Below are positions 1-12,560 of a stretch of DNA of 12,560 bases, one piece after another. The translations under genes were made by a program, and so were the position numbers. The stretch is from Ascoidea asiatica JCM 7603 (taxonomy: Eukaryota > Fungi > Ascomycota). The stretch is taken from the NCBI GenBank assembly GCA_001600695.1, contig BCKQ01000020.1, positions 168,116-180,675 on the forward strand, written 5' to 3'. Each line of letters begins with the position of its first letter. The stretch's first letter is position 1. The notes under the pieces were generated by a model that did no database searches, was not told where the DNA came from, and saw only the letters and a list, made by a program, of their open reading frames with translations.

Positions 1-12
1 AAAATAATCACA

Positions 13-1057
13 ATGTCAGAAATACGTCAGTAAGTATTTATTCAATCATAATCCAAAAGTAAGATAATAAAGATAAAATACTAATGAAATATATTATTTT
101 ATTTTAATAAGATTTATTAAAGAAATACCTCCTGTAACAAGGACATTTTTACTTGGTCCATTAACTTTACAAGGTTTACATTCTTTAGGTTTAATATCTT
201 CTTCAACTTGGCTTTGTTATTGGCCTGCAATTTTTAAAAAATATCAAATTTGGAGACCATTTTCTGCATTTTTTATTGCTTCTGGTATTCCAATGGAACA
301 ATTATTTACAATGTATATGATTTATTCATATGGAAAATCTTTAGAAATTAATAAATTTAAAAACATTACTTTAAATTATATTTATTATATTATTATTATA
401 TGTCCAATATTATTATTTTCAACAATTTTAACAGAAAAATTAGCTTTATTAAGTGCATTACTTGGTTCATTTATTTATACATGGTCAAGATTTAATAAAA
501 ATACAAGAGTTAATTATATGTTCATACCAATTAAAGGAGAATTATTACCTTTGGCAACATTATCATTTTCATTATTATTAGGTGGATTTAATGCATTCTG
601 GGAATCTTTATGGGGTTGTATTGGAGGTTATGTTTATGGATGTTTTGAAAATGGAAATTTTGGTCCATTTATTCATTATTTAAATTATAAATTTTTTATT
701 AAAAATGATAATAATAATAATAATAATAATAATAGTGAAAAATATATTGATGGTGGATTTCTTAATGCACCAGATTGGTTAATTTCATTAAGAAATACAT
801 TATTACCAACACATACATATGCAGGAAATAAATATAATTATTTAAAAAAAAATAGAGGAGGTTATAGACTTGGAGATTTAGATGATCAAGATAATAATAA
901 TAATAATAATAGTAATAGTAATAGTAATAGTAATACCGAAAGTAATAGCATTGGTGTTAATAAAAAAGAATCTCAGAATAAATCTTCGAGTAGTGGATTA
1001 TTAAGAAATTTAACTAGAAGTAATTTTAAAGGTAAAGGTCATAGACTTGGGGAATGA
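13..1057 (+). CDS. DFM1: Derlin-family rhomboid pseudoprotease, Dfm1-like, copy A; join(13..29,112..1057), 320 aa
   Basis: ATG at 13, spliced across 30..111, gives MSEIRQFIKEIPPVTRTF..., in frame with the 293..1057 ORF. Has the derlin N-terminal IPPVTR, the WR motif (YQIWRPF), several TM segments and GxxxG (GCIGG). Two C-terminal SHP-box-like Cdc48-binding motifs (GGYRLG, FKGKGHRLG) favour Dfm1 over Der1. Confidence 0.88.
30..111 (+). other. Spliceosomal intron of DFM1 copy A (82 nt)
   Basis: 5' site GTAAGT at 30, branch point TACTAAT at 79-85, 3' AAG ending at 111. Removal restores the reading frame and the conserved derlin N-terminus. Confidence 0.85.
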
Positions 1058-1085
1058 GCAAAAAAAAAAAAATAGAAATTGATAA

Positions 1086-1544
1086 TTAATAATCAACAAA
1101 ATCATCACCTTTATCTTTACAATATTCAATTAATGGTTCAATAATTTTTTTCCATTTTTCAGAATTATTATAATATTCATCACAACCATCAGAAATACAT
1201 TTATTAACTTTATATCTAAAATGAGCAGAACAATTACAATTTTCACCAATTAAATCATCTTGAAAATTACAACCTTTAAAAAGTAATTCAGTTTCTCTAC
1301 ATTCTTTATCACACCAAAAATCAGGCCATTGAATATCATCATTTAATTTTTTTAATTCAGATAATGGTAAATTTTTAATTTCTTCATATGATAAATCTGA
1401 TAAATTTAATAAATTTGATAAATTTGATAAATTTGTTAAATTTCTTGATTGAATAATATTTTCTAAATCATTTGGAATTGGACCTGCGGAGGTAATAAAA
1501 GAAAAAGAAAAAAGAGTAAATGGAATTAAAATATATGAATGCAT
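1086..1544 (-). CDS. Small secreted cysteine-rich protein, CFEM-like (152 aa)
   Basis: N-terminal signal peptide (MHSYILIPFTLFSFSFITSA) and an NLT/NLS repeat linker. Eight Cys spaced C-x3-C-x9-C-x10-C-x-C-x10-C-x4-C-x20-C, close to the CFEM pattern. Codon usage matches the host. Confidence 0.75.
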   Translation of the reverse strand: MHSYILIPFTLFSFSFITSAGPIPNDLENIIQSRNLTNLSNLSNLLNLSDLSYEEIKNLPLSELKKLNDDIQWPDFWCDKECRETELLFKGCNFQDDLIGENCNCSAHFRYKVNKCISDGCDEYYNNSEKWKKIIEPLIEYCKDKGDDFVDY

Positions 1545-1919
1545 TTTTAAATATATTATTATATTATTACGTTAAACTTTTGTATATATAAGATATTATG
1601 ATTATTAGAAATTGAATAATAATTTGCTAATGATTAATGATTAATGATTAAATGATTAATGAATAATGAGTTAATAGTTTTAAAAGTAGTAAATATTATA
1701 TTAACAAAAATAAAATCTGATTATTATACTGTATATTTAAATGGGTATTCGAATCTTAATATTGAGTTAACCATGGAATAAACAGAAAGAAATGACAGAA
1801 AAACTAAAAAATTAAATGTTTTCTTCAGCAAATTCACCAAATTCACCAGAAAACCTCAAAAACTTCAAAAAAAAAAAGGATTTTGGCACAAAAACAAAAA
1901 AATCAAAAAATATAAAAAC

Positions 1920-2135
1920 ATAGCCGATAGCCGACACAGTCGGATATGCCGGCATATGAATATGTATGCATATGCTTTTATACATGCCTTTAATAACAGT
2001 TTGGTGCTTATAACGGAACTTAAAAAAAGTGTTCCGGAAACAAATCCATGCACAAGGAAATAAGAGCCCTAATTGCATCCGTAAGAGCCCTTTTGCTTCC
2101 GTGTACGGAATCCTTGTAACCGTGCCATGGAACTT
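1920..2135. promoter_or_regulatory. GC-richer, palindrome-rich core of the divergent promoter between the CFEM-like gene and the EMP47-like gene
   Basis: CCGAC-N3-GTCGG 1931-1943, ATATGCCGGCATAT 1944-1957, TTCCGGAA 2032-2039, TAAGAGCCCT twice (2061, 2082), TTCCGTGTACGGAA 2097-2110; A-tracts on the left. Confidence 0.45.
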
Positions 2136-2383
2136 GTTCCTGTATTTTGTTCCTGACTTTGTTAGGTGTTAATTTCAGGAACAATTTCAATTTCAATCTG
2201 GAGATGGACAATGAAAGTTGGAAATATTTCAATGAATTGACAAGAAACAATGAAATATACAAAAGATATAAGATAATATTCTAATTGTAAAGTGTAAATT
2301 AACTTGTTTTAGTAATAAAAATATTGTGGATTATCCAATTTCAATTTCAATTCAAGAAAATTCAAGAAAAAATATTTAAAAAA

Positions 2384-4024
2384 ATGTTTCAATTAATAAA
2401 ATTAAAATTAAATTTAAAGATAAATTTAATTTTTTTACCAATTTTAATAATATTTCTTTTATCATTAATTAAATCAATTAATGCTCATTATCCTACTGAA
2501 CCAGTGAAATTTTCTTCAATGTTATCATTACCTGATTTAACATCATTAATTGATAATTTTAAAATTGAAAATTTACCAAATTTTAAAAAAAAACATTCAA
2601 CAATTTTTAAACCTGGTAGAATAATTTTAACTCCAAGTGGTAATGAAGATAATAATGATATTGAAAATAATAATGATAATAATAGTAATAAAAAAAGAAT
2701 AATTGGTTCAATTTGGAATTTAAAAAATAAATTATATTCAAATAATTGGACAATTAAATTAACTTTTAGATCTTTAAATGCTTTAGGTAAAACTAATGGT
2801 GGTCTTGCATTTTTTTTAATTAAAGATGATGATAATAATAATAATAATAATTTTAAAGATTTTGAGAAAAATGTAATTAATAATGATATTGATTTATATG
2901 GTGGTCCATCAAAATTTAATGGTTTATCTTTAATTATTGATTCTAATGGTCCTTTATCTTCTTCACTTAGAGGTTATTTAAATAATAATGAAAAAAAATT
3001 TAATATTAATGATAATTTATTTTTTAGCCAAAGTTTTGCTTCATGTTTAATTGCTTATCAAAATTCAAAAGTTCCAATAACTTTAAAATTATCATATTCA
3101 AAAAATAATAATAATTTATTTGTTGCTTCAATTGATAATAAAATTTGTTTTAGATCTCAAAATTTAATTGATTTTTCAAATTCTAATGGTTATTATATTG
3201 GTATATCTGCAGATTCTGGTGATAATGGTATTGAAAATTTTGAAATTTTAAAATTTAAAGTTTTTGATGAAGATATTTTAAAAGAAGAATTAAATGAATT
3301 TGGTGAATATGCTTTACAACCAAAATTAATTCAAAAAACAATTGATAAAAATGATAATAAAGAAAAATATATTGAAGCTCCAATTGAACAACAAAAATTA
3401 AATATACAAAATTTACAAAAACAAAAAGATGAAATTGAAAAAATTAATCAAGAAAATAATAATAATAACAATAATAATAATAACAATAATAATAATCAAA
3501 TAAATAATGATTTAATTAAATTAACAAATTTAATGCATTCATTAGAATCTAAATTTCAAAAGTTTAATAATAAATTAGAAGATTCTATTAAAAAACAAAA
3601 TTCAATATCATCATCATCAACGACAAATAATAATAATGGAAATTCAAATTCAAACATTGATACTGAAAGAATTTTAAATGAAATTAATTCATTAAATTCA
3701 AAACTAAATACAATTAATGATCAAATTGAAGAAATTTCAATAGTTCAAGATAATTCAATTTTAAAAAATTTAAGAAAATTAATTTTAATTGAAGATAATA
3801 AAAAATTAGATAAAAATAATTTTATAAATACAAATTTAAAAAATTTAAATAATTTAATCAATCAACAAAAATTAAATGCAAAACCAATGAATCATTCAAA
3901 TAATTCTTCTATTAATTTAAATTCAATAAAATATATAATGTGGTTATTAATAATAATTACTTCATGTTTATTATTCATTAATGTTAAATTAACAAGTGAA
4001 ATTAAACATTCAAAATTATTATGA
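2384..4024 (+). CDS. EMP47: L-type lectin ER-Golgi cargo receptor, Emp46/Emp47-like (546 aa from ATG 2384)
   Basis: Signal peptide, then a legume-lectin-like domain (GRIILTP, GSIW, WTIKLTFRS, GGLAFF, LYGGPSKFNGLSLIIDSNG, IGISADSG, FEILKFKVF). Followed by a coiled-coil stalk, a C-terminal TM and the tail KHSKLL, similar to the Emp47 KxKLL end. The ORF-track start at 2324 is a TTG; the first ATG is at 2384. Confidence 0.85.
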   Translation: MFQLIKLKLNLKINLIFLPILIIFLLSLIKSINAHYPTEPVKFSSMLSLPDLTSLIDNFKIENLPNFKKKHSTIFKPGRIILTPSGNEDNNDIENNNDNNSNKKRIIGSIWNLKNKLYSNNWTIKLTFRSLNALGKTNGGLAFFLIKDDDNNNNNNFKDFEKNVINNDIDLYGGPSKFNGLSLIIDSNGPLSSSLRGYLNNNEKKFNINDNLFFSQSFASCLIAYQNSKVPITLKLSYSKNNNNLFVASIDNKICFRSQNLIDFSNSNGYYIGISADSGDNGIENFEILKFKVFDEDILKEELNEFGEYALQPKLIQKTIDKNDNKEKYIEAPIEQQKLNIQNLQKQKDEIEKINQENNNNNNNNNNNNNNQINNDLIKLTNLMHSLESKFQKFNNKLEDSIKKQNSISSSSTTNNNNGNSNSNIDTERILNEINSLNSKLNTINDQIEEISIVQDNSILKNLRKLILIEDNKKLDKNNFINTNLKNLNNLINQQKLNAKPMNHSNNSSINLNSIKYIMWLLIIITSCLLFINVKLTSEIKHSKLL

Positions 4025-4344
4025 TTTTCTTCCTTTTACTTTTACTTTTAATTTCACTTTTATATCACCTTTTACATTTTATTTTTTAAATATCTTTTAA
4101 ATTATTCTTCCATTTTATTTTTTTTCTCAAGTTGGTATCATTAACTGTATTTGTATTTAGTATTTTTATCGTTTATATTCAATACACGTCTCTTCTAATT
4201 CAATTGCTTCACTTCAATTCAGCTATTTTAATTCAATACATGTCTCTTCAACTAATCGTTTCTTTCCTTCAATTGTTTCAATTAAAATTGATTTCAAATT
4301 GATTTCAAATTACTTTCAATTTAATTTCAAATTTAATTTCAAAT

Positions 4345-4590
4345 TGAAAAATTTCAGTGCCCCGTAAATAAAAGCGGGAATTCCGAGCTTTTTTATGGAA
4401 CCCCGAATATATTTTGTGACCCGAAAAACACGAAAAAAAAAAAAACGCGAAAAAATTAAAAACAAAAACCAAAAAACAAAAAAAAAAGCTGAAGCCACAA
4501 AAATAGGAAATTTTTTAAATTTTTTAAATTCTTCAAATTCTTCAAATTCTTCAAATTATCTCATTTTTAACATATTTCTATATTTAAGGG
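4345..4590 (+). promoter_or_regulatory. Promoter module: RRPE, Reb1-like site, SCB/MCB-like sites, poly(A) tracts, TATA-like element
   Basis: TGAAAAATTT 4345-4354, TGACCCG 4417-4423, CACGAAA 4429-4435, ACGCGAAA 4445-4452, TATATTTAA 4579-4587. Motif identities are borrowed from S. cerevisiae. Confidence 0.4.
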
Positions 4591-4865
4591 TTCATTGATT
4601 ATAATTACCTAGAAATTGGGGTATTTTAGAAAAACACTGCCTATGAAATAAATAGAAACAATCTAATAAATCAAGTTATGAAATTGTCAGAAATGGAACT
4701 TAATAATCTTTGAAGAATTACCACAACTAAGGCAAATCAACAGATTTATTATCATTTGATAAAAATGATTTTAAAAGAAATCATATAAATACAAAATGAA
4801 TTATTGATTCTCCTTTTAATTCACTTTAATAAATATTTCTGCAAATCTTGTTGAATTTGATACAA

Positions 4866-4889
4866 TATATATATATATATATATATATA
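4866..4889. repeat. (TA)12 microsatellite 20 bp upstream of the 4910 ATG
   Basis: Read directly. A second (TA)8 lies at 5433-5448, downstream of the same gene. Confidence 0.95.
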
Positions 4890-4909
4890 ATTCAATAACA
4901 ATATTCAAA

Positions 4910-5353
4910 ATGTTATCAACTATAAGACTTGCATCTATAATAATCTTAGGAGTTTTTATTCTTTTATTTTTCATAAATTTAATTCAATTATTTAGAGTTT
5001 ATTCAAGAAAAGAATTTAAAAATTATTCAAAACAAATTTATATTAGTTTAGTAATAACTGCTTTTTCAATTTGGTCAATTCCTGATACTTATAATGAATT
5101 AGATCAATGTTATCCTCAATCAAATTCAAATTCAAATTCAAATAATGCAAATAATTTTGATAATTATACAAAAATTTGTAAAATTATGTCTGCAATTTCA
5201 ATAACTTTGGTTCCTTTATTTAGTTTTGTTATTGCTTTTATTACTTTAACAAAAGTTACAAGACATTTTAAAAAAAATGATAAATCTAATTATATTAATT
5301 TCATATCTAATAATAATATTCAAAATAATTCTTATCAGAAATTACAAGACTAA
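4910..5353 (+). CDS. Small 3-TM membrane protein of unknown function, tandem paralog A (147 aa)
   Basis: Three hydrophobic segments and a Cys-bounded loop (YNELDQC...YTKICKIMSAISIT). A clear paralog lies immediately downstream. Good AAAATG start context. Confidence 0.8.
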   Translation: MLSTIRLASIIILGVFILLFFINLIQLFRVYSRKEFKNYSKQIYISLVITAFSIWSIPDTYNELDQCYPQSNSNSNSNNANNFDNYTKICKIMSAISITLVPLFSFVIAFITLTKVTRHFKKNDKSNYINFISNNNIQNNSYQKLQD

Positions 5354-5793
5354 CAATAAATATAAATATTTTAAGAAATTTAAGTAATTAATCACTAGTA
5401 TTTTTTTGTTTTATAATATAATATAATTTTAATATATATATATATATATTTCAATATTATTATTTGTTTGTTTCATTATTATTTCTGTTTTATTTCTATT
5501 TTCATTTTTATACTAAAAAAATCACTTAATCATTTATTAAAACTTTTGATCTACTGTACTCTTAAAAATAAATCTCAAAAATTGAATTAAATACAGGATT
5601 CTGGATATTTATTATACCAAGCCCTTGTTTGCAATATGAAAGGTTCCAATTATCAAATTTAATAATAATTTTTGTTTTCTTTGTCATATATAAAGGAGTT
5701 TATATTTAATTTTATCTTTTTTATTTTATCTTTTTTCTTTGAAAATAAGATTATTTCAACTTCCTACTAAATCAAATATTTATATGAATAAAA

Positions 5794-6220
5794 ATGTTAA
5801 AACAAATAAGAATTACAGTTGTAACAATTGCATCTGTTTTTCTTTTATTAATTTCCATTAATATAGTTATGTTATATAAAATATACTCAAGAAACTTATC
5901 TCAAAATTATGTTAACGAAATTTTTTTTAATGTCATAGTATCTACATATTCATTTTGGCAACTTTTTGATAATTATAATGAATTAGATCAATGTTTTTCA
6001 GATTCAAATTCGAGTAGTGATAATGATTATTATACAAAAAAGTGTAAATTAATGTCTGCAATTTCAATAACTGTTGTTCTTTTTATGAATAGTCTTTTTG
6101 CATTTTTTTCTTCAATTAAAATTTTAAAAATTTTTAAAAAAGATAAAAAAAACTGATTATCTGAGTCTTACTTCTCATAATAATACTCAAAATAACTCTG
6201 ATCAAAACTTACAAGATTAA
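5794..6220 (+). CDS. Small 3-TM membrane protein, tandem paralog B; stops at 6156 as given, but extends to 6220 (141 aa) if one A is removed from A8 at 6145-6152
   Basis: Shares YNELDQC and CKxMSAISIT with paralog A, plus a 23-nt identical block (5089-5111 = 5973-5995). The shifted frame reads TDYLSLTSHNNTQNNSDQNLQD*, which aligns without gaps to paralog A's SNYINFISNNNIQNNSYQKLQD*. Confidence 0.8.
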
Positions 6221-6317
6221 TTTTTAAAATGGTTCAAAGAAATAAATTAAATTTATATATTATAATAAAAACTAATATTCAATTAACTCATCAACTACCT
6301 AAATACATATATATATG

Positions 6318-6506
6318 CTATGAATGAAAGGGTTTATCTGCATATTTTCTTGTTGATCTAACTTCTATTTTTCCAGTACTTATAAAAGCTAATGGAATTG
6401 GTGAACAATTTAAAAAATGTTTAGATAATGTAAATCTTAATCTATAATCACCAGTTACTATAATTCCTAAATCTCTAAATTGAAAGTCATAAATAGCTAT
6501 TTCCAA

Positions 6507-6540
<34 letters not shown>

Positions 6541-6845
6541 GTTTTATTTGAATTCAAATTATAATCAAAATTCGGATTAAAAATGGTATTTGCAACAACA
6601 ATTTTATTACCATTTAAAATATTTTGATTTGAAACTAGCAAATTTGTTTCATAATCAAATATTGAAACATCAGTAATAAATTGAGAATTAGTTAATGAAT
6701 TATTATTGGTAATTAATTTAATTATATTATATGGTTTCAATAATCTTTTTGTTTTATATGATGATTGTCTCCCATGAGTTGAAGATTGTACAATTGAAAA
6801 ATTATAAAAATAATTTATTGAATTAATGTTTCTATTTTCAGCCAT
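6318..6845 (-). CDS. Velvet-domain protein (VeA/VelB/VosA/VelC superfamily), minimal single-domain form (175 aa)
   Basis: N-terminal YNFSIVQSSTHGR...KRLLKPYNIIKL matches velvet Y.L.I.QQP..AR...RR.IDP.PII.L. ILNG..VV matches the L.G.LV strand. FQFRDLGIIVTGDYRLRFTL matches F.F.DLSVR.EG.YRLRF.L. STGKIEVRSTRKY matches S..F.V...K.F. Confidence 0.75.
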
Positions 6846-8473
6846 TTTTGTTTGAAGGAAAAAAAAAGAAATTTTATATAACTTTGAAATAAAATAAGTC
6901 TTCTTTTGATGATTGTTTTGATATTTTGTAAATAAACCATTTTATAATATTTAAAAACTATTTAATTGTAATTACTAATGTCCTTTATATATCAATATTG
7001 ATCAAATATCTCTTAAATTAACAAATCAACCTCAAATCAAAAGATATTGTTTTTTCCTATAATCTGGTTCAAATCAATGACTTTGTACTCCTTTCAAAAG
7101 AACTTCATTGATTCTAAAGTACTGTAAGTAACAACCCATTTATTTCAAATCCAGTTATTGATCATATATTTGATTCCAGCTTCCTTTAAAGTTTTCCTTT
7201 ACAAGTAAAGGTTTTGTCATCATTTTTGATTAAGGTAATGATATATTACAATAAGTTATAAAAACACATAATTATAACATTTAATTCAATTATTTGGGAT
7301 AATAATTGATGTTTTATTACGATTTATTATATGAGATTATTGATTTCAAAATCAGTAAAATAATATATTACCGATAAAAGAGGCGAATTTCAAATGTTTA
7401 CAAATTATCTGTTAGAAAAATGAATAAGTATAGCCTTTAACGACAAGCCATCATTAAAATTTCGATTTAAAATCAAATAAATCAAAAATTTTCAAGAAAG
7501 ATAATGAAGCATCAGATTATAAAATATAAAAAGTGATTAATGCTCTCGTTTTTTATTGTATTTTTATATACATTCAATTCTTTCAGATCCCTAAAAACAA
7601 TTATTTATTCTCCGAAGCCATGATATTTTTTCACTGTTTTTAAAATGAATACTCATTGATACTCAACAAATTTTTTAGGATTAATTCAGCCAATAGATTT
7701 GATATATTTCCATAAAGATGATAATAAAATTATTTTACCTCTTTTTTAATATTGACTATTAATCTAGTTATTGAAATTTATTAGAAAAAAAAAAGAGCTT
7801 TAAATTCAAAGTTCAAGTATTTTTAACCTCAAGAGAACTTTTAACTCCTTACTTTCAGAATTCAAATCATTCATAAATTGATGAATGACCTATTTAAAAA
7901 AGGTTGGGTTTGAAAGGTCTTGTATATTGTAATTTTTCAATTTCAACTTCAACTTTGAATTTTTATCCAAAAAAATGAAAAAAAAATAAAAAAACATTTA
8001 AATTTAAAAGGTTTTTGATCCGTAAAAACTTAAAATACGATCCAAAAAATGTTGTTCCATGTGGTAGCATGCACTTTTGTATCCCGAGAGTAGAGGAATT
8101 TCGTACTTGTCTGTAACTATATGCGGCTAGCATTTTTTTGAGTTAGTTCAATTGCCGGGCCAATCAAAACACTTTAGAAAGAATTAAAAAATATTTTTAA
8201 AATGAAAAAATGAAGTAAATAATAAAGTTAAAGATAAATTTATTAGACGTGAATATTTACATTAATTTTATAGATATATAAATAATTTGTAATTGAAATT
8301 GTAATTGAAATAGTTATTATTAAAAAAATTTAAAAAGGTATTTTAAAGAATAAAGTAATTTTTGAATAAAGATAAATAGAAAACAGAAAATAGAAAATAG
8401 AATGGAGTCATTAAAGTATTATGATTAAAATAAGAATAAAAATAATAATAATAATCATAGAACTAAACTATAA

Positions 8474-9607
8474 TTAAAAGTCTAATTCAACTGGACCACC
8501 AACAGAACAATATTGTCTCCAATCTTTAAATAAAATATCAATCATTAAATCATAAAATTGTTCATCATCAATAGAATTAATTAAAGTACCATTACCAGTT
8601 TTAACACCAGCTGTTGGAGCAAAATCAGCACCCCAAATTCTTAAATTACCATAAAATGGAGAATAAAATGAAGTATCAACTGCACAAGTAACATTAATTG
8701 AATCTGTAATTAATTCAGGAAGAACCATAAATGCAGCAGTTACTTCATCCCAGAATGGTAAAGTTTCTTGATCATTATTTTCACTATAATTACCAGTATA
8801 AACAATATCTTGAACAGCAGCAAAATAATCATTATCATCAATAACATCTAAACCACCAGCTTTTTCAATAATTCTATCATATAAAGCTTGAGATGGTACT
8901 AAATAATTAGTTACATTACCACCAATATATAATTCATTCCAATCTGCAGTTAAAACAATTTGAGCAGCTTCAGGATCTTGCATTAAATTTATATCAGTAT
9001 TAATATCAACTTGAATTGAAGAACCAACAGCAGCAGCATATTGAGTATCAATATAACCACCCATAATATATAAACCACCAGCTTCTTTTGCTAAATTTGG
9101 ATAAATACTTAAAGCTTGAGCAACAGTTGTCATCATTCCAGCAGCAAAAATTAAAACTGGATCAGTATCTTTATATTGTTTAACAGCATTAATTAAAGCA
9201 ATTGCACCTGGAATTGTATCATTATAAGTAATATTATCCCAAGAATAAGAATCTTCATAACCAGGAGCAAAAGCACCTTGCCAAACAAGTTCACCAAATA
9301 AAGATTCCCATAAATGAAAAGTATCATTAGTTCTTAATAAAGGTTGTTCAGCACCATTATAAAAAGGTATACAAGAAGTTAAATTATAAGTTTTTAAAAT
9401 ATCATAAGCACTACCAGCAGAATCAACACTTGAAGAACTACCAAAAGAAGTTGAAAGACCAACAACTTCATAACCTGCATAAAGAGGAAATAATAATTGT
9501 AAAGCAGCTAAACCATCATTTTCAATAAAAACTTTTTTAGATTGAATTAAAGTTGATAAAGAAATTAAAGAAGTTGTAATTGATAATAATTTTTTGAAAT
9601 TAAACAT
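8474..9607 (-). CDS. Secreted inosine/uridine-preferring nucleoside hydrolase family protein (377 aa)
   Basis: Signal peptide; fold motifs VVGLSTSFG, IPFYNGAEQPL, AAGMMTTVA (GPLTN equivalent), LYIMGG, INLMQDPEAAQIV, PFWDE (HD equivalent); many N-glycosylation sequons. Confidence 0.85.
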   Translation of the reverse strand: MFNFKKLLSITTSLISLSTLIQSKKVFIENDGLAALQLLFPLYAGYEVVGLSTSFGSSSSVDSAGSAYDILKTYNLTSCIPFYNGAEQPLLRTNDTFHLWESLFGELVWQGAFAPGYEDSYSWDNITYNDTIPGAIALINAVKQYKDTDPVLIFAAGMMTTVAQALSIYPNLAKEAGGLYIMGGYIDTQYAAAVGSSIQVDINTDINLMQDPEAAQIVLTADWNELYIGGNVTNYLVPSQALYDRIIEKAGGLDVIDDNDYFAAVQDIVYTGNYSENNDQETLPFWDEVTAAFMVLPELITDSINVTCAVDTSFYSPFYGNLRIWGADFAPTAGVKTGNGTLINSIDDEQFYDLMIDILFKDWRQYCSVGGPVELDF

Positions 9608-10489
9608 TTTTGATTCTATTTTTTATTATTCTATTTTTGATTCTATTTTTAATCTATTTTTTTTTTTTGTTTTGAATTACTATTATCAAAAAAGATTTGA
9701 GAACAAAAAAAAGGAAAGGGAAAAAAAAAAGAAAACTAAAATTGAAGATTGAAAAGTGAAAGACATTTTAATTGTATTTATATTTGTAATATATTTATGT
9801 GAATATGAATAACGATATGAATAATGATATGAATAATGATAGAAATAAAGTTTTTAAAAAATGTGAATAGATATTGAGAAATAAGAAAAAAAGAAAAGAA
9901 TTTAATCTAAATTGAGTTACTCATTCACCAAAAAAGAATTTTTTTTTTTTTTTTTCAATCAAAGATAATAATAATGCTTAATCAAAATGGTTATCTATGA
10001 ATATTAATTTTTCATATATTTTAAATTTTGAAATATTTTTTTTCTATAAGTAGTTAAATTAAGGTTGGAATTTTCTCTCAAGTGATAGAAACAAATTAAA
10101 GTTATTCATCATAAATAGTATTGGAAAAAAAAGAAGTAAATAACATAGTAAATAGTTTATAAAGTTAACATTAAAATAAGTTAATACTTGAATAAAAATA
10201 GGTTTGGTTTTAAAGGGCACAAAAAGGCAGCCAAGTTTATGGCTGCTTGATTTTCATCGAGTTAAGAGATTTTATTTAGATATCATTAAATTTCATTAAG
10301 GTTTATTTATTCAATTCTTGAATAAGAATATTGAAAATAAAAAAGAAATACAGTATATGAAATAATTCTATTAAAACATAGCTAAAATAACTCGATTAAA
10401 ATGATAAATTGAATAATTGAATGGATTTTAATTCATTTATAAAATTAACAACAATTTTCTTGCTTTTTCTCGGAGAAATAAAAATACTA

Positions 10490-11129
10490 ACAGGGCCAAA
10501 TCACGCGTGCTGAGATAATCCGAGAGGAGGTTTTCGAGGTGACAGTTTCCTGTTTCGGCGGTGGTCGGTTCTCTAGAGGTTTATCCGATAGCCCCTCGGT
10601 CGAGCCTCGGGGAATGTCTGATAGCTCGGGACACTGCATCCGAACGTAAAGGCCAGCCAGGTGCAGCAACGGGCATAGCCGCTTGCAAAGTTGCACAAAA
10701 GCGGCTTTTGACTGCCCGCACCGCCACTCATCTGCCACATTCACCAAATCAAGACACAAATAGAAGCAAAAGCTGTACAAATTGAAAGAAGAGAATCAGA
10801 CGAGGAAAAAGAAAAAGCAACAGGAACTGAAGATGAAGTAGAAACAGAAGCAACATCAAAGAAACAGAAGCAACCATTTTTGCTGCTGCAGAGGATTTCA
10901 AAGCAGTTTCTCTCGTTGCAAATCCACTTTCGGCCACTGCCGCGGCACCCCGGCACGGTTTTACAAAGAAACTCGAAATTTTCAGGCTTAAAACGATAAG
11001 CGATAAGGAGATGAAAAAAAAAACCCATTTTTAAAAACCCATTTGAGTATTGAAATAAAAATATAGACAATAATATTTTGATAGGGAACAGTAAATATAT
11101 CTTTCAATGTTTTTCTTTGATTTTTTTTG
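10490..11129 (+). ncRNA. Candidate structured non-coding RNA, possibly telomerase RNA; boundaries and strand tentative
   Basis: GC-rich island in an AT-rich background with many nested helices and no convincing ORF. TATAAAA at 10438-10444; template-like GCCAC-TCATCT-GCCAC at 10723-10738; Sm-like ATTTTTTTTG at 11120-11129 followed by GTAAGA. Confidence 0.4.
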
Positions 11130-11254
11130 GTAAGAAAAAGAAAATTTCAAATTGAAAAAATAACTATTTTATCATTTAAATAGATTTATCATTAAAAAAA
11201 TGTGTCCTCTTTTTCTTTCATGGTTCCTTTGATTGATTTTATTTGTAAAATTTA

Positions 11255-11335
11255 GGCAACATGGCCGAGTGGTTAAGGCGAAAGATTAGAAATCTTTTGG
11301 GTTTACCCGCGCAGGTTCGAGTCCTGCTGTTGTCG
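11255..11335 (+). tRNA. tS(AGA): tRNA-Ser(AGA), intronless
   Basis: Acceptor stem GGCAACA/TGTTGTC, A box TGGCCGAGTGG, anticodon arm AAAGA-TTAGAAA-TCTTT (AGA at 11288-11290), long variable arm GGGTTTACCC, B box GGTTCGAGTCC. Confidence 0.98.
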
Positions 11336-11336
11336 A

Positions 11337-11343
11337 TTTTTTT
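11337..11343 (+). terminator. RNA polymerase III terminator (T7)
   Basis: T-run immediately after the tRNA discriminator base. Confidence 0.85.
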
Positions 11344-11491
11344 ATTTAAATTTACATATTTAATTATTTAATCAATTTGAAAAATATTTAATTCAATTTC
11401 TTTTTTACAAATTATTATTTACAAATTATTTTTTTACAAATTACATTTTTAAATCATTATACATTTCCTAAATAATTGATAATTAAAGAAT

Positions 11492-11802
11492 TCATTCTCC
11501 AAGTCTATGACCTTTACCTTTAAAATTACTTCTAGTTAAATTTCTTAATAATCCACTACTCGAAGATTTATTCTGAGATTCTTTTTTATTAACACCAGTG
11601 CTATTACTTTCGGTATTACTATTACTATTACTATTATTATTATTATCTTGATCATCTAAATCTCCAAGTCTATAACCTCCTCTATTTTTTTTTAAATAAT
11701 TATATTTATTTCCTGCATATGTATGTGTTGGTAATAATGTATTTCTTAATGAAATTAACCAATCTGGTGCATTAAGAAATCCACCATCAATATATTTTTC
11801 AC

Positions 11803-11853
<51 letters not shown>

Positions 11854-12548
11854 CATTTTTAATAAAAAATTTATAATTTAAATAATGAATAAATGGACCA
11901 AAATTTCCATTTTCAAAACATCCATAAACATAACCTCCAATACAACCCCATAAAGATTCCCAGAATGCATTAAATCCACCTAATAATAATGAAAATGATA
12001 ATGTTGCCAAAGGTAATAATTCTCCTCTAATTGGTATGAACATATAATTAACTCTTGTATTTTTATTAAATCTTGACCATGTATAAATAAATGAACCAAG
12101 TAATGCACTTAATAAAGCTAATTTTTCTGTTAAAATTGTTGAAAATAATAATATTGGACATATAATAATAATATAATAAATATAATTTAAAGTAATATTT
12201 TTAAATTTATTAATTTCTAAAGATTTTCCATATGAATAAATCATATACATTGTAAATAATTGTTCCATTGGAATACCAGAAGCAATAAAAAATGCAGAAA
12301 ATGGTCTCCAAATTTGATATTTTTTAAAAATTGCAGGCCAATAACAAAGCCAAGTTGAAGAAGATATTAAACCTAAAGAATGTAAACCTTGTAAAGTTAA
12401 TGGACCAAGTAAAAATGTCCTTGTTACAGGAGGTATTTCTTTAATAAATCTTATTAAAATAAAATAATATATTTCATTAGTATTTTATCTTTATTATCTT
12501 ACTTTTGGATTATGATTGAATAAATACTTACTGACGTATTTCTGACAT
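11492..12548 (-). CDS. DFM1: Derlin-family Dfm1-like protein, copy B; complement(join(11492..12449,12532..12548)), 324 aa
   Basis: Intact inverted duplicate of copy A. Differs by K>R, I>T, two silent changes, N8>N16 and a 4-codon-shorter N/SN tract. Confidence 0.88.
12450..12531 (-). other. Spliceosomal intron of DFM1 copy B (82 nt)
   Basis: Exact reverse complement of 30..111. Confidence 0.85.
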
Positions 12549-12560
12549 TGTGATTATTTT

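Follow-up and report, generated by a model that had tools for sequence, protein, structure and literature searches.

Flip/flop mating-type switching has arisen independently 10-11 times in the budding yeasts, Ascoidea rubescens included (PMC6692504). The systems designated FF1 are those of Ogataea polymorpha, Pachysolen tannophilus and A. rubescens (PMC6692504, PMC5720833); in A. rubescens the flipping MAT region is adjacent to a telomere (PMC6692504), and switching in Ogataea uses RAD51 and RAD17, no dedicated recombinase being known (PMC5720833). On chromosome XIV of Saccharomyces cerevisiae, the FF region comprises 24 kb devoid of MAT genes between 4.2-kb inverted repeats of a gene pair. 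In the course of evolution this region has been inverted anew through gene conversion accompanied by crossover, and it showed no change in ~53,800 mitoses and 950 meioses (PMC9731477).

The locus analyzed here lies in Ascoidea asiatica. The window, the whole stretch of 12,560 nucleotides submitted to analysis (C20:168116-180675, on the 234-kb contig C20), holds a block flanked by two DFM1 genes; positions outside 1-12560 continue the window numbering along the contig, of which 106 kb was examined around the locus. The initial annotation suspected in this arrangement a relative of the programmed MAT flip/flop systems, a kinship that our results do not support: MAT lies on other contigs, the species is heterothallic (PMC6692504), the flanks are housekeeping and promoters would be unchanged by a flip. 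Nothing in the sequence suggests a regulated switch, and the block could instead flip by ordinary recombination, because the DFM1-PMP47 unit stands twice, in opposite directions, around it.

Anatomy of the inverted repeat and its cargo

The coordinates of all features are collected in Table 1. When the reverse complement of 11492..12560 is set against 1..1057, the counts first reported are recovered: four transitions (at 364, 534, 951 and 1051) and two changes in microsatellite length, of 24 and 12 nt, neither of which disturbs the frame. The repeat is present in the assembly as described, but the description is incomplete, for the repeat runs beyond both window ends with promoter and PMP47. 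The contiguous arms span -656..1057 and 11492..13211 (~1.71 kb, ~99% identical) and, when deletions are allowed for, extension of the flanks carries the homology outward to -868 on the left and 14040 on the right. Inward, arm identity breaks off at the final base of the DFM1 stop codon (1057 and 11492). The duplicated unit is the divergent DFM1-PMP47 gene pair, with its source at 11492..14040; it runs from the DFM1 stop through PMP47 and lacks only the last 10 nt of that gene, stop codon counted.

The window is cut at two mirrored N positions within the arms, 0 and 12561. There are four such mirrored sites per arm, all in the promoter (-354, -258, -98 and 0 on the left; 12561, 12659, 12819 and 12915 on the right), and they may correspond to arms that differ between homologues. 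Some of these promoter sites lie nearer to resolved differences than other sites that were themselves resolved. For the 13-nt direct repeat found just inside both arms no mechanism was found; for one pair of windows, at least 13 nt are shared by 0.7% of random AT-rich 40-nt window pairs.

Table 1. Features of the DFM1-PMP47 locus, in window numbering extended along the contig.
Feature	Position	Strand	Remarks
PMP47/ANT1-like pseudogene	-868..-458	-	three deletions, nonsense change
Left arm, in-window part	1..1057	+	continues unbroken to -656: shared promoter -457..12, then PMP47 start
DFM1, left copy	13..1057	+	two exons (13-29 and 112-1057) around intron 30-111; derlin, two SHP boxes
13-nt sequence	1077..1089	+	recurs in direct orientation at 11474-11486, each copy immediately internal to its arm; borderline
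Small secreted 8-Cys protein, CAP22/CFEM-like (weak; lead score 0.81)	1086..1544	-	single copy
EMP47-like L-type lectin cargo receptor	2384..4024	+	PF03388, E 5e-20
Tandem small hydrophobic orphan genes	4910-5353 and 5794-6156	+	~70% DNA identity to each other
Minimal velvet-domain gene	6318..6845	-	PF11754, 28.2 bits against a cut-off of 25
Inosine-uridine nucleoside hydrolase family protein, hydrophobic N-terminus	8474..9607	-	PF01156, E 1e-35
GC-rich non-coding island	10401..11000	no strand	similar islands at -1249..-900 and 14151..15550
tRNA-Ser(AGA)	11255..11335	+	multi-copy family
Right arm, in-window part	11492..12560	-	continues via shared promoter 12549..13018 into intact PMP47
DFM1, right copy	11492..12548	-	intact; 156 nt 3' spacer, then tRNA
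PMP47/ANT1-like carrier, intact	13019..14050	+	343 aa, PF00153; homology to left copy stops at 14040

Judging from their sequence, both arm genes are DFM1, distinct from DER1, because they combine the DER1-family domain (PF04511, E 2e-33) with two SHP-like motifs at the C-terminus that are absent from the third derlin of the genome, on contig C4. The identity first assigned to them therefore stands. As also described initially, the two frames are open and convergent, pointing inward, and their 82-nt intron (30..111 in the left copy, with its donor at 30, branch site at 79-85 and AG at 110-111) is identical in both.

The partner gene has fared differently in the two arms. The only intact PMP47/ANT1-like peroxisomal carrier found is that on the right. 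In the left arm the whole gene is represented, broken into five blocks that reach -868; it has lost 492, 78 and 47 nt in three deletions bounded by microhomologies of 2, 7 and 2 nt, respectively, and the longest of these deletions removes the counterpart of 13212-13703. Its substitutions include one nonsense and four missense changes, and the two missense changes that were checked alter residues conserved in 6/6 homologues. The left PMP47 is a pseudogene, and of the two copies of the unit it is the left one that decays. A retrocopy origin of the duplicate is ruled out, since intron and promoter have been retained and the deletions lack GT-AG ends.

The cargo between the arms measures ~10.4 kb and is single-copy in the assembly, and its 8-Cys gene has its stop only 28 nt from that of the left DFM1. 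The inventory given by the initial annotation left out the EMP47-like lectin gene. No MAT gene or recombinase was found inside the cargo, in agreement with that inventory; the search for a Flp-family recombinase gave no match, and its control search was likewise empty. The lack of a recombinase does not discriminate between readings of the locus, because Ogataea switching works through RAD51 and RAD17 with no such enzyme known.

A candidate RNA that had also been proposed for the cargo could not be upheld, as the GC-rich island at 10401..11000 matches no Rfam family and is not more stably folded than its shuffles (z -0.45). With no Rfam family and similar islands close by, its interpretation as a structured or telomerase RNA is unsupported. 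Non-coding islands of this type reach 40-49% GC, where genes mostly have 15-30% GC; they also lie upstream of neighboring genes, and are probably promoter DNA.

Origin and maintenance of the arms

The assembly displays four distinct unique junctions and a decay specific to the left copy. The reading we prefer, which we hold to have about an even chance of being right, is that of a real local inverted duplication of DFM1-PMP47, the arms of which stay alike through their youth and through occasional non-allelic conversion, and which undergoes rare, unregulated inversion with little effect. The divergent gene pair would have been duplicated locally in inverted orientation, after which the left PMP47 decayed while both DFM1 genes and the shared promoter would stay near-identical, owing to the youth of the copies and to non-allelic gene conversion that acts on them now and then. 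If such a conversion ended in a crossover within the arms, the 10.4-kb cargo would be turned around, a point on which the first description of the locus was right, and such inversion would be a rare and unregulated product of homologous recombination. After a flip, the DFM1 copies would keep identical promoters, the cargo genes their own, and the intact PMP47 would remain on the right; because every one of these genes would retain its promoter, little or no effect is to be expected. Since a flip would alter no promoter-gene link, only a chromatin position effect could make it functional, and of such an effect there is no sign here.

Gene conversion between the arms is suggested by two observations: both ends of the homology fall on stop codons, and differences are sparser in promoter plus DFM1 than in the outer pseudogene. 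The outer, dead PMP47 shows 6 differences in 405 nt, against 4 in ~1500 nt for promoter plus DFM1 (Fisher p 0.009), a contrast that weakens to p 0.09 once the four N sites are counted as genuine differences. Purifying selection on DFM1 could explain part of its lower divergence. Limits of this kind, one at the DFM1 stop and the other 10 nt inside the 3' end of the PMP47 frame, are as expected where coding similarity has been kept and 3' ends have not. On the other hand, a single young event would account just as well for the ~1% divergence seen throughout.

Such a one-off event, now a static and decaying relic, is the foremost alternative, possible but in our estimation doubtful. It may have involved a staggered-break inversion, or a replication template switch by which a copy, inverted and partly deleted, was placed between ELO2 and the Cys-rich gene. 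That staggered breaks give rise to such duplicates is established (PMC1885836), and a staggered-break duplication is a fair account of how the locus arose. The ~1% divergence and the sharp ends, which leave no residual 3' homology, speak for an event of this kind, as do the mere 28 nt that separate the left DFM1 from the next stop and the three large left-copy deletions with 2-7 nt microhomology, set against only 6 substitutions. Random breaks, however, are unlikely to put both ends on stop codons, and an aldolase-like gene pair on the same contig has a conversion-like profile.

Synteny bears on the same alternative. The closest named homologue of ELO2 is that of A. rubescens, which is directly preceded by a small Cys-rich secreted gene on the same strand, with neither DFM1 nor PMP47 within 10 kb, an arrangement that would favor insertion without net inversion. 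The Cys-rich proteins of the two species, however, are at most candidate orthologues: BLAST gave no match, and they share only a loose cysteine pattern and weak CAP22/CFEM leads. Synteny by way of PMP47 and EMP47 homologues reached only distant yeasts, in which the neighbors are different.

Genomic context and competing readings

Inverted gene pairs also occur elsewhere in this genome. On the same contig, 31 kb from the DFM1 repeat, two convergent class II aldolase-like genes lie 14 kb apart at 44139-44990 (+) and 59347-60237 (-). Their identity is ~100% in the middle but drops to 82-91% toward the ends, a profile that resembles gene conversion with a homogenized middle. An actin-related gene forms another inverted pair, with its copies ~27 kb apart at C16:272637-273881 (-) and C16:300405-301649 (+). 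Candidate further copies of the latter gene are present on two short contigs (C46:11301-12545 and C62:3114-4265), and these may be alternative alleles of the C16 bracket.

It can be conjectured that A. asiatica harbors many gene-made inverted repeats around blocks of 3-50 kb, and that these recombine enough to yield mixed orientations within a clone or between homologues. We consider this rather unlikely but, if true, the genome would consist of numerous blocks that flip independently, and new flip/flop systems like the mating-type one of the sister species could readily arise from them. Taken alone, the DFM1-PMP47 locus amounts to a commonplace inverted duplication in which one partner gene is dying, and its value is that of a well-resolved case of a seemingly common genome pattern. 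If a lineage readily turns host genes into kilobase inverted repeats, it would exhibit the raw material of flip/flop switching; the more interesting question is a genome-wide one, namely whether the brackets of this yeast invert.

An assembly artefact, or a merge of two homologues each with one DFM1 (or with the left copy on one homologue only), we judge to be quite improbable. The species is diploid (PMC6692504), and its assembly includes the short contigs with candidate extra copies of the actin-related gene. The mirrored N sites indicate that the assembler failed to resolve the middles of the arms, and inverted repeats made by assemblers have been documented in other yeasts. Yet the two DFM1 copies touch different cargo ends without a gap, whereas a heterozygous inversion joins the inner end of the gene to the same cargo end in both alleles. 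A simple join of two alleles of an inversion, as once considered for this locus, cannot yield the four distinct junctions seen. The left copy, moreover, bears deletions and a stop of its own, and no haplotig of the cargo or of the intact PMP47 was found in the assembly, where both are single-copy. Over the 106 kb examined, N letters are confined to repeats or to one scaffold gap, so that the unique DNA gives no sign of mixed alleles; from the letters themselves, the pattern appears to fit unresolved differences between repeat copies rather than mixed alleles. Three DNA runs from two studies contain 99-100% of the words of the cargo, although these runs may be the source of the assembly and are uninformative on the junctions.

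The chromosomal setting is that of ordinary genic DNA. Beyond the left arm, at 0.8-4 kb, come ELO2 and a SIS1-like gene; on the right side the neighbors include a velvet-like gene and a sugar transporter. Both flanks are gene-dense, with housekeeping genes within a few kb. Neither a telomere repeat nor a centromere-like gene desert was found in the 40 kb leftward and 53 kb rightward within the 106-kb contig span, and genes stand beside both arms; no silencing neighbor of the kind that had been envisaged was seen in this span. The contig ends in a Ty3-like element, and a 3.6-kb gap lies near -40 kb. Two Ty3-like elements (-15515..-9268 and 63038..65966), 96% identical over 2.9 kb and in opposite orientation, bracket the region at a distance of 72 kb from each other. 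A centromere of the inverted-repeat type is ruled out, as its core would be gene-dense.

About ten velvet-like frames are spread over the contig from -27684 to 46240, two of them above the Pfam cut-off, one at it and the rest joined by similarity. In A. rubescens, three velvet-like frames lie near ELO2. The velvet family is not expected in most budding yeasts, and these frames look like a lineage-specific expansion. One velvet-like gene region is directly duplicated (31674-32887 and 40279-41435, 83% identical over 1.2 kb).

The cassette is unconnected to mating type; the MAT alleles sit on other contigs. The sole MATalpha1 match is on contig C50, between AGE1-like and STE20-like genes; a second AGE1, 37% identical, is on C26, which is the probable location of the MATa allele. 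A. asiatica is classed as a heterothallic diploid, and its published MAT layout agrees with this arrangement (PMC6692504).

A programmed flip/flop that moves one cargo end beside silencing chromatin, as at MAT in Ogataea, Komagataella and A. rubescens but with a non-MAT cargo, has only a very slight chance of being correct. In its favor, the arms, at 1.7 kb, come close in size and identity to those of known flip/flop systems, which measure 2 kb; the sister species A. rubescens flips at MAT; and the cargo includes a velvet-like gene and small secreted proteins. This reading is opposed by the lack of telomere repeats or gene deserts in the span just given, by ELO2 and the SIS1-like gene outside the left arm and the intact PMP47 outside the right one, by cargo ends that carry neither alternative alleles nor paired regulators, and by the occurrence of inverted gene pairs elsewhere in the genome.

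Comparison with known invertible regions

With the FF1 systems the locus shares a general architecture, in that a single gene-derived inverted repeat, of ~2 kb in FF1 and with 1.71-kb arms at ~99% identity here, surrounds a segment (8-44 kb in FF1) with no site-specific recombinase inside. FF1 segments, however, have MATa and MATalpha at their ends, whereas here neither lies inside, no silencing neighbor is seen and the species is heterothallic. The staggered-break duplicates of Drosophila (PMC1885836) offer another parallel, since there too non-repetitive genes stand inverted at both segment ends and one copy decays by deletions; the A. asiatica repeat is near the upper range of size reported for those breakpoint duplicates, ~1.9 kb (PMC1885836). 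In contrast to the Drosophila breakpoints, the weak synteny with A. rubescens suggests that the left cargo end may retain its ancestral neighbor, so that an inversion is only one possibility here.

The closest known case is the FF region of S. cerevisiae. In both, the near-identical arms are a duplicated host gene pair, the cargo is ordinary and without MAT, and inversion is expected by way of conversion with crossover. The two differ in that the arms here measure 1.7 kb and consist of housekeeping genes, with one PMP47 dead, and in that FF itself is defined by polymorphism and age. The A. asiatica locus may nonetheless work like FF.
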